Positions 1,669 through 7,302 of a stretch of DNA of 7,741 nt are shown here, piece by piece. The stretch comes from Paramicrosporidium saccamoebae KSL3 (Eukaryota; Fungi; Cryptomycota), in NCBI GenBank assembly GCA_002794465.1, contig MTSL01000084.1, forward strand, positions 20,187 through 27,927, in the 5' to 3' direction. Numbering within the stretch: position 1 is the stretch's first letter; each line of letters begins with the position of its first letter. The notes below the pieces were generated by a model that was not told the origin of the DNA, ran no database searches, and saw nothing but the letters and a program-made list of their open reading frames with translations. The translations under genes and the position numbers were made by a program.

Positions 1669-1739
1669 GCAAGTTTGGTTTAGTGGTATAATTGCCGCCT
1701 GCCACGCGGTAGACCCGGGTTCGATTCCCGGAACTTGCA
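1669..1739 (+). tRNA. tRNA-Gly: tRNA-Gly, anticodon GCC, eukaryotic type (no intron, no encoded CCA)
   Basis: Acceptor stem GCAAGTT/AACTTGC plus discriminator A. D-loop AGTGGTA. Anticodon stem GCCGC/GCGGT with loop CTGCCAC (GCC at 1701-1703). T stem CCGGG/CCCGG with loop TTCGATT. Closely resembles eukaryotic tRNA-Gly(GCC). Confidence 0.97.
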
Positions 1740-1743
1740 AAAC

Positions 1744-1747
1744 TTTT
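1744..1747 (+). terminator. Possible weak Pol III terminator (T4) after tRNA-Gly
   Basis: TTTT begins 5 nt after the tRNA 3' end. With only four Ts it may be leaky in fungi. Confidence 0.4.
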
Positions 1748-1762
1748 AAAAAGGCTAAAGGC

Positions 1763-1845
1763 TTGAAGTGATGATCAAATCAAAGAGTCAAGCTCTGATG
1801 CCAAAGGCAATGCAGACAAATTTGATTACGACGGTATCTGATCAG
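1763..1845 (+). ncRNA. Box C/D snoRNA with two rRNA antisense elements (LSU target equivalent to yeast 25S U2417; SSU target equivalent to yeast 18S C1007)
   Basis: Box C GTGATGA 1768-1774, box D' CTGA 1795-1798, box D CTGA 1838-1841, and a short terminal stem TTGA(1763-66)/TCAG(1842-45). The D' guide AGAGTCAAGCT (1784-1794) is complementary to conserved LSU AGCUUGACUCU. The D guide GATTACGACGGTAT (1824-1837) is complementary to conserved SSU AUACCGUCGUAGUC (14 bp, one G-U). An internal hairpin TGCC-AAA-GGCA follows D'. Box C' is degenerate and not placed with confidence. Confidence 0.88.
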
Positions 1846-2146
1846 TCTTTTGTATGGGGGAGTATCGTCGCATAGTCGAGTCCTTTTGTGTTGCGTATTA
1901 GGGGTTTTGTATTGCATAGTGGGAAAGATGCCACGGCCCAAGCCAGACGGAAAGAAAGTTTGTCCACTGTTAATCCAACGGATCGAATCATGCAGTGACT
2001 CATTTATTATCGCTCGCTTTTAATTTAAAAGCCTGTTTCTAGTCTCACAAATGACGCATTAACAGTGCTAAACAATAAGGATACAAACCTCATTGTTTTT
2101 CATTGGTCGTCCAAGTGCCTGGCCCATCTCACTACCACTTGCCACA

Positions 2147-3125
2147 ATGGTGTGGCTGCATGACGTTGGCTCTCCAGCAGACAGTGTCGAACTTTTGCCA
2201 ACAGTCGCTGGAGAGACATTTATTTCAGTTGCTACGTATTTGTATGACGAGAGTGCCAAGACGCGGTCTGGAGAACTGCGGATAGCCAAGGTGCTCTCAG
2301 AAGACAAGCTGTGCCGCCTTCTGAAGCGCCTCTAAATGTTGTAGGGAAATGGTTGAAAAGATCCATGGTCCGGGTGTATTGGATGTCAAGTGGACTGGAG
2401 GTGCTGATAAAAGTTGCAGCGGTGTATGGGCGTGTTCGGACGGAAGCGTCTCTATGGGTGTTTTCGACCCAACCATGGAAAAGCTGCAGGTACAGTCCAC
2501 ATTTGACCTGGATGCAGAGAGCATCACAATGGCCTGCGATATGAATAATGACCTTATTGCTGCCGCAATGAGCAGTGGCGCCGTCATTCTTTGCACCAAA
2601 GCTGGTGACGTACATGCCATAAAAGGTCACTCACTGGAAGCATGGACTGTTGCATTTGACCCACACCAGCCGCATATTCTCCACTCGGGCGGCGATGATG
2701 CCAAATGGCGGGGATGGGACTTGCGTAGTAGGGATTCTGCATTCACATGTTCATGGCATACCGCTGGCGTCTGCTCCATCCAACCGCATCGAACTGATGC
2801 AAATCTCATTGTCACAGGAAGCTACGATAAACACGCCGCATCGTGGGACCGGAGGACGCTACAGCAACCATTACAAACGGTCAAGGCCAATTCGGGGGTT
2901 TGGAAACTTAGATGGCATCCAAGCGACGACATGAGAGTGCTGGCCGCTTGCATGTATGACGGATTCTACGTCTTTGACATGCAACCTGCCCACGTTTATT
3001 CCAAATATGATCCACAGGCTCTGTCGTATGGGTGTTCATGGCTCAATGCCGCTACAGCAGTGACATGTTCCTTTTACAACCACCAAGTCCAATTATGGAA
3101 GGTGGATAACTATAATGATAAATAG
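2147..3125 (+). CDS. DPH7: Diphthine methyl ester hydrolase-like WD40 protein (Dph7/Rrt2/WDR85); exons 2147-2310 and 2345-3125, 314 aa
   Basis: Splicing joins MVWLHDVGSPADSVE...VATY...RSGEL...DKL to EMVEK.... Family-typical motifs: PADSVE, LDVKW, HSLEAWTVAFD, GGDD...WDLR, HTAGVCSI, TGSYD...WDRR, GVWKLRWHP, ACMYDGF, SYGCSW, TCSFYN...LW. Confidence 0.88.
2311..2344 (+). other. Spliceosomal intron, 34 nt (DPH7)
   Basis: GTGCCG...CTAA...TGTAG. Removal restores the frame (CT+G GAA ATG) into the 2349 ORF. The donor at 2291 would not restore the frame with this acceptor. Confidence 0.75.
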
Positions 3126-3234
3126 ATTGCCAAATAGAATGCTAAACAGATTGCTAAACAGAATGCTAAATAGACTGCTAAATGGAATGCTAAACAGAAT
3201 GCTAAATGGAATGCTAAATAGAATGGCCAATAGA
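3115..3234. repeat. Tandem repeat, 10 x 12 bp, consensus ATGCTAAAYAGA
   Basis: Units: atgataaataga, ttgccaaataga, atgctaaacaga, ttgctaaacaga, atgctaaataga, ctgctaaatgga, atgctaaacaga, atgctaaatgga, atgctaaataga, atggccaataga. The first unit overlaps the DPH7 stop codon. Confidence 0.95.
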
Positions 3235-3293
3235 GATGACTGTTTACATGAACCAAGTGTCTAGTGGCGCCGATTGGCCGATCATTCCATTCA

Positions 3294-3989
3294 ATGCAGC
3301 CACTTTACATTATTGCTCTCACATGTCTGGCACAGAGCTTCGTATGGGCAGCCGTCAAGAAACACATTAAAAACAACCCAGCGGGGGCGCTCTTCACAGG
3401 CGTATCGGGTAAGGAGATTACACAGACGGCAAAGGTGGTCAAGGCGCTGGCCAAGGGCTCTGACGTAGTATTCGTGTCCAGTCCAAAAAAGGTCAAGGAC
3501 CTGGATAAGCTTCTTACTGAGCAAAAATATCATTTATACACACTGCACAAGGTGCGAGTGGCCAGCAAGTCAGTGCTGACGCAAGAGGGTGGTGTTCTCG
3601 TGTACACACACAGCAACGGAAGAAAAATTCTACTAGACGTGGGCACCAAGACAGAGACGGAGATGCTGAAACAAGCCGAATGGCTGCGGCCGCAGGATCC
3701 CGATTACATCATGTTCCGACGGAAAGATTTCAAGAACCGCTTTCTCCATGCCGTCCATATGCCAGCAGTTTTAGATGACACAAAGATTGGAAAGGGTACC
3801 GTGACGCTGCAACTGCTAGAAATTGCCAAGATGCCCGCCCCTGAGGAAAAGATGCAGTCGGGAGAGATGGGTGTTTTCAAGCTCATTTTATGGATTTGTC
3901 TAGCAGTGGCTGTTCCGGCGATAGTTGTCATCTCTGCAGTCCTAGTGCTCCGCAGTAGGGCTAAACGGGCCGGCGAAGCAAAACTTTAG
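3294..3989 (+). CDS. Hypothetical type I membrane protein, 231 aa
   Basis: The ORF track starts at GTG 3264, but ATG 3294 gives a signal-peptide-like N-terminus (MQPLYIIALTCLAQSFVWA). A C-terminal TM helix (LILWICLAVAVPAIVVISAVLVL) is followed by the basic tail RSRAKR. AATAAA lies at 3993-3998. Confidence 0.75.
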   Translation: MQPLYIIALTCLAQSFVWAAVKKHIKNNPAGALFTGVSGKEITQTAKVVKALAKGSDVVFVSSPKKVKDLDKLLTEQKYHLYTLHKVRVASKSVLTQEGGVLVYTHSNGRKILLDVGTKTETEMLKQAEWLRPQDPDYIMFRRKDFKNRFLHAVHMPAVLDDTKIGKGTVTLQLLEIAKMPAPEEKMQSGEMGVFKLILWICLAVAVPAIVVISAVLVLRSRAKRAGEAKL

Positions 3990-4243: not shown

Positions 4244-5513
4244 CTATGCAATTTTTACAGACCATTCGTGCTGTATTTCGCCATATTGGATCATAGTGAT
4301 GGCCTCCCAGAATCGCATCGCCAGAGGACCCGCCATACTCGTGGGATCCTTCTTATCGAGGGGAATCTGCAGATCCTGTCCGTTATAATGTATTGCCTTG
4401 ATTGGCGACACCACAGCGGCCGTGCCGGCTCCAAACATTTCATGCACTCGGCCCTCGCCCAATGCACGGGTCAGCTGCTGCATGGTGACGGTGCGTTCAC
4501 TGACTTTGAATTCGTTCCAATTGCGTCCCAATTCGAGGATAGAGTCTCGTGTTACTCCTGGAAGAATGGTTCCATCCGTCAGAGCGGGGGTCACCAATTC
4601 CAGCTCATCTTGCTCGTTTGTCCAGTAAATGAAACAATTCATAGTGCCCACCTCGGTGACTTGATGATCTGGACCAAACAGCCACAGGATCTGCTGATAT
4701 CCAGCCGGTGCCACCTTGGTTTGAGGCAGAATTCCCCCGGCATAGTTACTACAAAATCAACATTAACCCCCATCCATGGCATACGCTCCAATCTTGTAGG
4801 CACCAGTGCCTCCCGGCCATGCCCGCACAAAGCGATCTTCGGCATAAAGCGACACGGGACTAAAGCCAGTTTTGTAGTACGGCCCCACAGGACAGCAAAT
4901 GACAAAGAGTAGCGCTTTGTTGGGGGGAGACACTCCCAGGGATTCCTGAGTGCCGATAATGGTCGGACGGATGTACAGCGAATAGCCGGGCTGGTCAGGG
5001 ATCCAATCACTGTCCGTCTTTACCGTCTCTTCTACAAGTGCCAACAACTCTGTTGGATCAAAAGACGGCAGCGCCAGTCTTTGTGCTGAATTAAGTAGCC
5101 GCTGCATGTTGAGCTCTGGACGGAACAATCGGACAGCGCCGCTGCGGTCCTTGTACGCCTTTAACCCCTCAAAACATTCAATGGCATAATGGAGCACTGA
5201 AGCCGATGGTGGCAGTGAGAGATTGCCGTACGGCTGGATGAGCGGGGTTGCCCAGCCCTGTTCACGCGTCCATTCGCAGGTCAACATGTGGTCAGTGAAA
5301 GTGTGTCCAAACTGCAGTTCTGCCAGCGCAACCCTTTCTCGTCGCGTCTTGGTCAACTCTACCCGCAGTCGTTTGTGCTACGGAGCTGTCGACAGTAAAA
5401 AGTATTACCTTGAGGGGCAATCCCGCTGACGGCTCATTGATTTGTGTTGGCATCGATGGTATTCGGCGAGAGGAAAAGTGACGACAAATAAGCCCCACAA
5501 CCCGTGAGACCAT
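4244..5513 (-). CDS. BAT1: Branched-chain amino acid aminotransferase (PLP fold IV), probably mitochondrial; exons 5513-5409, 5377-4785 and 4748-4244, 400 aa
   Basis: Motifs FGHTFTDHML, YAIECFEGLKAY, LFRPELNMQRL, YIRPT, RAWPGGTGAYKIGANY (catalytic Lys; GANY formed only after splicing), GYQQILWLFG, EVGTMN, ILPGVTRDS and EMFGAGTAAVVSP. The N-terminus MVSRVVGLICRHFSSRR resembles a presequence. BAT1 versus BAT2 orthology cannot be resolved here. Confidence 0.95.
4749..4784 (-). other. Spliceosomal intron, 36 nt (BCAT intron 2)
   Basis: GTATGC...TTAA...TTTTGTAG. It contains an in-frame TAA, and removal gives the conserved KIGANY motif. Confidence 0.93.
5378..5408 (-). other. Spliceosomal intron, 31 nt (BCAT intron 1)
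   Basis: GTAATA...CCGTAG, phase 0. It joins ...LPLK to HKRLRVELTKT... and so links the ATG at 5513 to the conserved domain. Confidence 0.8.
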
Positions 5514-5939: not shown

Positions 5940-7302
5940 ATGACAAAGGGCAAATACACCATTGATGACGCCCTCGAGGCCGTCGGCTTTGGACGTTTCC
6001 AATGGATGCTTCTTGTGCTCTCGGGCATTGGTTTCTTTGCCACCACCGTCGAGCTCATTTCCGTATCACTTTTGCGTGCGCCTCTGCGAGAGCAATGGCC
6101 TGCCGTGGACGACAAACGTTTTGCATATCTCATGTCAGCGACGTTTGCGGGCGAATTGTTGGGCGGGTTGGCGTGGGGAGCGGTGAGTGATCGCATGGGA
6201 AGACGGGCCACCTTTGCAGGCACCGCTCTTATGGCTGCCGTATTCGGCATGTTGGGCTCGGTGGTTCCGTGTTTTTACAGCTTTGCTATCACTCGTTTCG
6301 GCCTTGGTTTTGCCATTGGCGGCAGTTTGGCCATTGATTTTGTCTATTTTGTGGAATTTGTGCCTGCCACCTCTCGTGGATTCCGTACCACCTTTATCAT
6401 CCTTCTGGGGATCATGGCATGTATGCAGTTTCTTTTTATAATGCACTGTAGTCTTTTACGCCTCTCTGGTGGGCTGGCTGACTTTGCCCGTCTGGCGATA
6501 TTTCGTCTTTCTTTGCGGATTGCCTTATGGCTTGCTGTTTCTGGGACGTCTCGCCTGGCGCTGGGAATCCCCGCGTTTCCTTATGGCTCGAGGACGCACT
6601 GCCGAGGCCACCGAAGTGCTTCGACAGATTGCCAAACAAAACGGCACTGTTCTTCCAGAGGGCGAGTTGGAACCGTTGCAGAACATTTCCACCTCCGCTC
6701 CCGGATTGGCGTCCATTGCCTCGGCTGGGATGATTCGCCCCACCATTACCGTCAGCATCCTCTTCTTCTTCCAGACCTTTTCCTACTATGGTCTCACCAT
6801 TTGGCTGCGCAGTTTTGCTGCCCAACGAGGCATCCCCAATTTCAATCCCATGACTGCCTTTCTCGTCATTGGTCTCTCCGAGCTTCCCGGTCTCGCCCTG
6901 ACTACTCTCCTCATTGAACGTGCCGGTCGCCGTCCCGTTCTCCTTCTCAACTTTATTGGTAGTGCTCTTTGTAGTGCAATGCTGTTGTTGGTCACCACCC
7001 AAGCTGGCTTCCTGGCCGTCACCTGTGCATCGTACTTTTTCATTGTCGGCTGTTGGGCTGCCATCTATGTCTCCACTCCCGAAGTGTTCCCCACGACATG
7101 TCGTGCCAGTGCCTTTGCCGTTGCCGGCGCCTGTGGCAAACTCGCCGGTATGACCTCTCCGCATCTATTTGGACATTTGTTGGACATTAATGCGCCGTTT
7201 GGAACAATCGTGGCATGTGTCTCGGGTGGCTTCCTGATTGCTGCCCTAACCAGCGCCCTGCTCATGGTGGAAACTACTGGAAGACGTCTCCGAGACAATT
7301 AA
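5940..7302 (+). CDS. Major facilitator superfamily transporter, SVOP/SV2-like; exons 5940-6420 and 6452-7302, 443 aa
   Basis: N-terminal IDDALEAVGFGRFQW, motif A SDRMGRR, TRFGLGFAIGG, EFVP...RG, WRY, ESPRFL, ERAGRR and EVFPTTCRASA, with about 12 hydrophobic segments. Substrate cannot be inferred. Confidence 0.92.
6421..6451 (+). other. Spliceosomal intron, 31 nt (MFS gene)
   Basis: GTATGC...CTGTAG. Removal joins ...GIMA to FFYASLVGWLTLPVWRY in the frame of the 6469 ORF. Confidence 0.92.

Follow-up and report, generated by a model that had tools for sequence, protein, structure and literature searches.

The window analysed here is the whole 7,741-nt stretch of the Paramicrosporidium saccamoebae KSL3 contig MTSL01000084.1. 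It is gene-dense and its introns are short. A tRNA-Gly(GCC) gene and a predicted box C/D snoRNA lie on the same strand between an orphan reading frame and DPH7, as listed below.

104-1651: ORF1, a 515-aa orphan upstream of the tRNA gene, with no Pfam domain and a single homologue
1669-1739, plus strand: tRNA-Gly(GCC) gene (Rfam RF00005, 65.3 bits; Gly-GCC according to ARAGORN)
1740-1759, plus strand: tRNA-snoRNA spacer, with a T4 run at 1744-1747 and a 10-nt insertion at 1748-1757 relative to the related contig L001
1760-1848, plus strand: predicted box C/D snoRNA including its terminal stem, present in five taxa; sub-threshold Rfam alignments of snR66, snoR14 and snR79 span 1756-1851
1848-1851, plus strand: T4 run read from the sequence, candidate Pol III terminator of a read-through transcript
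2349-3125: DPH7, downstream of the snoRNA; best named match from a chytrid (36%)
About 4715-4762: intron splitting BCAT

ORF1 is a lineage-restricted gene, with one homologue among 5.8 billion proteins, encoded at 135-2294 of L001 (76% identity). Its stop codon shares bases with an AATAAA motif (1650-1655) and is separated from the tRNA gene by only 17 nt, and the same layout is found in L001. With the stop codon and AATAAA so close to the tRNA, the 3' end of the ORF1 mRNA has to be generated at the tRNA gene or within it. The best named matches of the BCAT exon are fungal (56-63%), those from animals and plants being slightly lower, as is also the case for DPH7. Closer relatives are represented only by unannotated metagenome and SRA assemblies. 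The MFS/sugar-transporter gene at 5940-7302 is split over two overlapping frames (5940-6917 and 6469-7302), which could reflect an intron or a frameshift.

The tRNA gene, which had been overlooked in the first-pass annotation of this DNA, ends 20 nt before the terminal stem of the snoRNA. Its discriminator base is A1739, the expected cleavage point of RNase Z. The 10-nt insertion in the spacer looks like a local duplication of AGGCT (AGGCTAA AGGCTTG). The snoRNA itself has a core at 1763-1845, or 1760-1848 when the terminal stem is included, and consists of the following elements.

1760-1766, plus strand: 5' half of the terminal stem, GGCUUGA, partner of 1842-1848; RNAalifold on five taxa gives three stem pairs with two-sided changes and pairing kept
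1768-1774, plus strand: C box GUGAUGA, of which UGAUGA is invariant in five taxa
1784-1794, plus strand: D' guide AGAGUCAAGCU, identical to the Rfam snR66 consensus at D' and invariant in five taxa
1795-1798, plus strand: D' box CUGA, invariant in five taxa
1799-1809, plus strand: D'-C' internal hairpin UGCC-AAA-GGCA, varying in length and sequence among taxa with pairing kept and two compensatory pairs
1811-1816, plus strand: C' box UGCAGA (UGCGGA in L058, L059 and L062), a typical degenerate C' box
1824-1837, plus strand: D guide GAUUACGACGGUAU, in the same register as in the Rfam snR79 consensus and invariant in five taxa
1838-1841, plus strand: D box CUGA, invariant in five taxa
1842-1848, plus strand: 3' half of the terminal stem, UCAGUCU (RNAalifold, five taxa)

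The spacer between the C box and the D' guide measures 9 nt. The fifth base upstream of the D' box is A1790, and the fifth base upstream of the D box is G1833. The RNA has the features by which the box C/D class is recognized, namely C and D boxes with a terminal stem, internal D' and C' boxes, and at least 10 nt of rRNA complementarity adjoining the D and D' boxes. The first-pass annotation had proposed a double-guide C/D snoRNA at 1763-1845, and all the elements that it named lie where it had placed them and are conserved in five taxa.

These five taxa are the window and four related contigs (L001, L058, L059 and L062), which carry the same snoRNA. The DPH7 encoded next to it is 84% identical to the window DPH7 in L001, 51% in L058, 54% in L059 and 50% in L062. 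In the five-way alignment, the D' and D guides (11 and 14 nt) and the C, D' and D boxes are invariant, and the C' box shows an A/G variant. The C-D' spacer, the hairpin, the spacer between the C' box and the guide, and the flanks are variable. Compensatory changes were detected by RNAalifold at five pairs only, three in the terminal stem and two in the D'-C' hairpin, the arms of which read GGCCAC/GUGGUC in L058 versus GGUCAC/GUGACC in L062; the other pairs correspond to invariant columns and are uninformative. Invariant guides and boxes combined with compensatory stems are what a functional C/D snoRNA with both guides in use would be expected to show.

The tRNA linkage is conserved as well. 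L001 has both the tRNA and the snoRNA in the corresponding position, with a 100% identical tRNA and a snoRNA that departs from the window sequence at a few positions outside the guides; the flanking sequence downstream cannot be aligned. Contigs L058, L059 and L062 start with the last 29 nt of the tRNA (identical), followed by the spacer with its T run and then by the snoRNA. The distance from the tRNA end to the C box is 28 nt in the window, 18 nt in L001, 18 nt in L058 and L062, and 24 nt in L059. A T run begins 3-5 nt past the tRNA in all five (T4 in the window, L001 and L059; T5 in L058 and L062). Past the snoRNA, L001 has a T4 run 16 nt after the D box and L059 a T5 run 17 nt after it; no run of at least four T was found within 40 nt past the snoRNA of L058 and L062 (only TTTGT/TTTATT). 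In run SRR21707646, BCAT (L004) and DPH7 (L058) are on separate contigs, unlike in the window, and the tRNA-snoRNA-DPH7 module is still kept. Other contigs of the relatives (L002-L004, L056, L057, L060, L061 and L186) contain neither the snoRNA nor a tRNA.

Two further observations concern these contigs. The independent SRA-assembly contigs L058, L059 and L062 are all broken at one identical base within the tRNA-Gly gene; this common break point fits a multi-copy tRNA-Gly of which one copy carries the snoRNA. The Mrt4 protein of the relative represented by L186 has its best match among solved structures in human.

The D' guide (1784-1794) forms 11 Watson-Crick pairs with GAGCUUGACUCU, or 12 when C1795 is counted, and the D guide (1824-1837) forms 14 pairs, one of them G-U, with AUACCGUCGUAGUC, two further pairs reaching into the D box. 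Through A1790, the D' guide would direct methylation of the LSU U that corresponds to 25S U2417 in yeast; through G1833, the D guide would direct methylation of the SSU C that corresponds to 18S C1007 in yeast. Target positions were numbered on L070, a yeast-type rDNA unit with Rfam matches for SSU at 2050-3849, 5.8S, LSU at 4604-7996, and 5S on the opposite strand; the rDNA used for this check was eukaryotic rDNA contaminating bacterial assemblies (GTDB genomes). The SSU 16-mer AGAUACCGUCGUAGUC occurs once in L070, starting at 18S nt 1001, so that its second C is C1007. The LSU 12-mer GAGCUUGACUCU is likewise found a single time, and its second U is nucleotide 2414 counted from the start of the Rfam LSU match. 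This U becomes 2417 if the 25S rRNA, which we take to be 3396 nt long, ends at 7996. Of 120 eukaryotic rDNA loci, which had been pre-selected by the SSU pattern, 50 contain both targets without mismatch; the SSU target had no match in IMG/VR. Since both rRNA sites, mapped here on yeast-type rDNA, are conserved, the guides are probably complementary to the rRNAs of P. saccamoebae itself.

In yeast, both positions are methylated, 25S Um2417 being guided by snR66 and 18S Cm1007 by snR79 (PMC5199042). The Neurospora crassa homologues are CD2 for the D' guide and CD18 for the D guide, and they are separate RNAs in N. crassa and Schizosaccharomyces pombe; no Arabidopsis or human homologue is listed for the CD2 and CD18 sites (PMC2780460), which would agree with a fungus-like affiliation of the window. 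The two targets named in the first-pass annotation thus agree with the mapping on L070 and with the register of the snR66 and snR79 consensus sequences, and its statement that yeast uses two separate snoRNAs for these sites is borne out by the literature, which extends it to the two other ascomycetes. Very probably, then, 1760-1848 (plus strand) is a canonical, conserved double-guide box C/D snoRNA with the equivalents of yeast 25S Um2417 and 18S Cm1007 as predicted targets. Its anatomy and its conservation are read from the alignment, whereas methylation at both rRNA sites is predicted by homology. The predicted snoRNP would consist of the RNA and the core proteins fibrillarin/Nop1, Nop56, Nop58 and Snu13, and would carry out two ribose 2'-O-methylations.

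A comparison with Rfam had been suggested in the first-pass annotation. In a standard scan, no Rfam snoRNA family reached its gathering score for 1760-1848. A permissive scan gave sub-threshold end-to-end alignments to snR66 (25.0 bits; gathering 65), snR79 (21.7; 55) and snoR14 (24.1; 40); for comparison, the Saccharomycetaceae-type locus L006 scores 85.3 bits with the snR66 model. Rfam contains no family with both guides in one RNA. With respect to Saccharomyces cerevisiae snR66 (RF00477), the D' guide and box AGAGUCAAGCUCUGA are identical to the consensus (15/15), the register is equal and the size is similar, but the D slot holds a snR79-type guide instead of the yeast sequence. With respect to S. 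cerevisiae snR79 (RF01184), the D guide ACGACGGUAUCUGA is one base apart from the consensus ACAACGGUAUCUGA, and the register and the predicted target C are equal; outside the D guide the two RNAs are unrelated, and the P. saccamoebae RNA also carries the Um2417 guide. By score the snoRNA belongs to no Rfam family, and it would work like snR66 plus snR79. A single P. saccamoebae RNA would in this way combine the jobs of the separate snR66 and snR79 of S. cerevisiae, S. pombe and N. crassa.

Guiding on both subunits is in itself not unusual, contrary to what the first-pass annotation implied. In S. cerevisiae, snR47 (18S Am619 and 25S Am2220), snR51 (18S Am100 and 25S Um2729) and snR52 (18S Am420 and 25S Um2921; presumably the yeast snoRNA that is transcribed by Pol III) are also C/D snoRNAs with one 18S and one 25S guide each, although their target sites differ and they have no sequence relationship to the P. 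saccamoebae RNA. N. crassa CD17 and CD22 likewise serve both subunits (PMC2780460).

The snR66 family was also searched in metagenomes with a pattern of the C box followed by the D' guide, which gave 51 loci. An earlier metagenome pattern, with both guides 15-45 nt apart, had given no match; the Pleosporales form described below has a longer gap, and L001 was outside the collection scanned. In eight of the 51 loci (L012, L026, L032, L048, L050, L051, L054 and L055), the RNA also contains a snR79-type D guide, CUACGACGGUAUCUGA, and its internal insert is longer. Exact-protein clusters assign L048 to Pyrenophora and L012 and L055 to Alternaria, both Pleosporales. This fused snoRNA carries the same two guides in the same D' and D slots of one C/D snoRNA as in P. 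saccamoebae. It differs in its length of about 118 nt and its long D'-C' insert, in lying 113-126 nt downstream of the RNase MRP RNA without a nearby tRNA, and in being unalignable with the P. saccamoebae RNA beyond guides and boxes, so that common descent and independent assembly are both possible. No description of a fused snR66/snR79-type snoRNA in Pleosporales was found in the literature searched.

Other members of the family have a different D slot. About 18 filamentous-ascomycete-like loci (L005, L008, L011, L014, L017, L018, L025, L027, L028, L031, L036, L038, L043, L044, L046, L047, L049 and L052) carry another, perfectly conserved D guide, AUGCGUUAUGGUAU(CUGA), for which no target with at most one mismatch was found in the 120 eukaryotic rDNA loci. 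Yeast-type loci, including those assigned to Nakaseomyces glabratus, Hanseniaspora uvarum, the Candida parapsilosis group and Sungouiella intermedia, are without a snR79-type guide. The D slot of the snR66 family thus appears evolutionarily labile and interchangeable, holding a snR79-type guide in the present lineage and in Pleosporales, another guide in filamentous-ascomycete-like loci and no recognisable guide in yeast-type loci. The fused form may be ancestral or may have arisen more than once. The first-pass annotation had considered an ancestral fusion or a fusion in a compact genome; the tie to compactness does not hold, as the same guide pair occurs in one snoRNA in the non-compact genomes of Alternaria and Pyrenophora. 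Fused and split guides are probably better read as recurrent reshuffling than as a special ancestral state.

No tRNA was found near the snR66-type snoRNA in any of the 51 metagenome loci. Instead, nhmmer located an RNase MRP RNA gene 113-250 nt upstream on the same strand in 38 loci, and in the seven loci tested it scored 66-96 bits with Rfam RF00030. Among L006-L055, examples of this pair are L048 1007-1599, L006 4981-5545 and L045 1442-2132, and the order spans Saccharomycetaceae, CTG-clade yeasts, Alternaria and Pyrenophora. In S. cerevisiae, NME1 and SNR66 are adjacent same-strand genes (PMC9731477). Like the P. saccamoebae snoRNA, snR66 therefore lies just 3' of another same-strand ncRNA gene; its partner is the RNase MRP RNA at 113-250 nt, whereas that of the P. 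saccamoebae snoRNA is tRNA-Gly at about 20 nt. The tRNA in the P. saccamoebae lineage and the MRP RNA in ascomycetes suggest that the snR66-type snoRNA is habitually located behind another ncRNA gene, the carrier depending on the lineage. A description of MRP RNA and snR66 as a conserved unit was not found in the literature searched.

The less ordinary point of the locus is the conserved tRNA linkage, which in the literature surveyed is mainly reported from plants. The tRNA-Gly(GCC)-snoR43 genes of Arabidopsis (12 copies) are Pol III genes whose transcripts are processed by RNase Z, and rice tRNA-Met-e-snoRNA is a further dicistronic plant gene (both from Kruszka et al. 2003, as relayed in PMC2566860 and PMC3141230). 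The dicistronic tRNA-snoRNA organisation was even termed exclusive to plants (PMC2780460); tRNA-like leaders were reported for Caenorhabditis elegans snoRNAs, with yeast loci mentioned too (PMC2527325). As in P. saccamoebae (20 nt; arrangement conserved in five taxa), plant tRNA-snoRNA genes have a C/D snoRNA directly 3' of a same-strand tRNA with a short spacer, the Arabidopsis isoacceptor is equal (Gly-GCC), and RNase Z cleavage, predicted for P. saccamoebae, would likewise free a snoRNA-containing trailer. The plant type is defined by having no terminator between the genes and a terminator after the second (PMC2566860), whereas here T4-5 is found in the spacer of all five taxa and a run of at least four T past the snoRNA in three of the five. 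Moreover, there is one copy per contig in P. saccamoebae and its relatives versus 12 copies in Arabidopsis; snoR43 is unrelated, with no Rfam match to it among matches with E up to 10; and the P. saccamoebae window proteins look opisthokont- or fungus-like, not plant-like. The layout resembles plant tRNA-snoRNA genes but differs from them in one defining feature, the T run of the spacer.

Production of the snoRNA by tRNA-coupled Pol III read-through has about an even chance, or slightly less. Pol III would start at the internal promoter of the tRNA gene, and a fraction of the polymerases would read through the T4-5 run of the spacer. RNase Z would then cut after the discriminator A1739, and exonucleases would trim the trailer to the protein-protected snoRNA. 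A promoter of its own has no room, because the stem starts 20 nt past the tRNA-Gly gene and the linkage is conserved. As tRNA genes are presumably transcribed far above what is needed for a snoRNA, low read-through might suffice. Weak Pol III terminators permit productive read-through (PMC3141230) and are documented to couple tRNA maturation with the production of a downstream RNA, for example in Arabidopsis tRNA-Gly(GCC)-snoR43 (PMC3141230; PMC2566860), which is one reason to favour this route. Pol III transcription is also known for one yeast snoRNA (PMC2527325). The main difficulty of the route is the conserved T4-5, a canonical Pol III stop, between the tRNA and the snoRNA. In the Pol III tandem units described, the terminator comes after the second gene (PMC2566860). 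Human Pol III is efficiently stopped by T4 and T5 in vitro; in S. cerevisiae, most tRNA genes have T6-7, and T5 or longer is regarded as canonical (PMC3141230).

The same T run, conserved 3-5 nt past the tRNA in five taxa, favours the strongest alternative, in which a real snoRNA is derived from a Pol II transcript (ORF1 read-through or 3' flank, or another unit) and the tRNA is a self-terminating bystander in a gene-dense genome. The missing run of at least four T soon after the snoRNA in L058 and L062 points in the same direction, as do the Pol II occupancy of yeast snR66 and NME1 (bioRxiv 10.1101/352906) and the ORF1 stop codon and AATAAA directly upstream in the window and in L001. This alternative is nevertheless the less likely one. 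The spacing of 18-28 nt between the tRNA and the C box persists between taxa whose DPH7 proteins are only about 50% identical, and also in SRR21707646, where the wider gene order has changed and BCAT and DPH7 are separated; a promoter has no room between the tRNA and the snoRNA; a transcript from upstream would need to cross a tRNA gene occupied by TFIIIC and TFIIIB; and contigs L058, L059 and L062 end in the tRNA, so that an ORF1-type upstream gene is seen only in the window and L001. The maintained spacing at the same time favours the Pol III route, and so does the ascomycete homologue, which in 38 loci follows another ncRNA gene, that of the RNase MRP RNA.

A functional double-guide snoRNA together with a tRNA-coupled Pol III route therefore makes the best overall explanation, and one that seems rather probable. 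A more ambitious reading can be put forward tentatively, its odds being somewhat short of even: the locus would be a true Pol III dicistronic tRNA-Gly(GCC)-snoRNA gene of a non-plant (probably opisthokont- or fungus-like) lineage, independent of the Arabidopsis snoR43 genes, in which the weak T4-5 splits the output between tRNA and snoRNA; given the MRP pairing in ascomycetes, the snR66 family would have been promoter-less for a long time, swapping its ncRNA carriers.

Two other explanations concern the RNA itself. Only one guide might be used, the other being a relic, so that the RNA would be functionally snR66-like or snR79-like only; some C/D snoRNAs do have an apparently unused guide slot, and yeast-type snR66 loci have no snR79-type D guide, but this is very improbable with both guides 100% conserved (11 and 14 nt, five taxa) while the spacer, hairpin and flanks change, and with the guide pair also conserved in the eight Pleosporales-type loci. 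A chance resemblance with no snoRNA at all, which could be argued from the absence of a Rfam snoRNA family at gathering score and from a single-sequence fold energy no better than that of shuffles (z = -0.9, as usual for C/D snoRNAs), can practically be dismissed given that the RNA is conserved in five taxa and its stem shows compensatory changes. Only 0.02 and 0.00 guide-plus-box motifs are expected per shuffled window, the four related contigs, which are independent, carry exactly these guides, and both predicted sites are known yeast methylation positions.

For annotation, two conserved rRNA methylations, one at an LSU site near the peptidyl-transferase centre and the other in the SSU, would be assigned to a single gene. 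What makes the locus interesting is mostly its conserved linkage to a tRNA and the way in which the snR66 family is paired with carrier genes. If tRNA-coupled expression is true, tRNA-snoRNA genes extend beyond plants, and the locus would show a leaky Pol III terminator put to natural use in yielding two RNAs.

A minor observation concerns the rDNA used for target mapping. More than 120 contigs of bacterial and archaeal assemblies (L066-L185) contain eukaryotic 18S rRNA, at least 50 of them as whole rDNA units, several with yeast-type spacing, which represents contamination. L070 itself is NZ_BMQD01000062.1, which is labelled Planomonospora parontospora although it carries yeast-type rDNA. In addition, three IMG/VR contigs classed as viral (L063 1-271, L064 1695-2060 and L065 1-369) bear terminal fragments of eukaryotic LSU rRNA, corresponding to model positions of about 2419-2816, and could result from misbinning of eukaryotic DNA or from an element inserted into rDNA.
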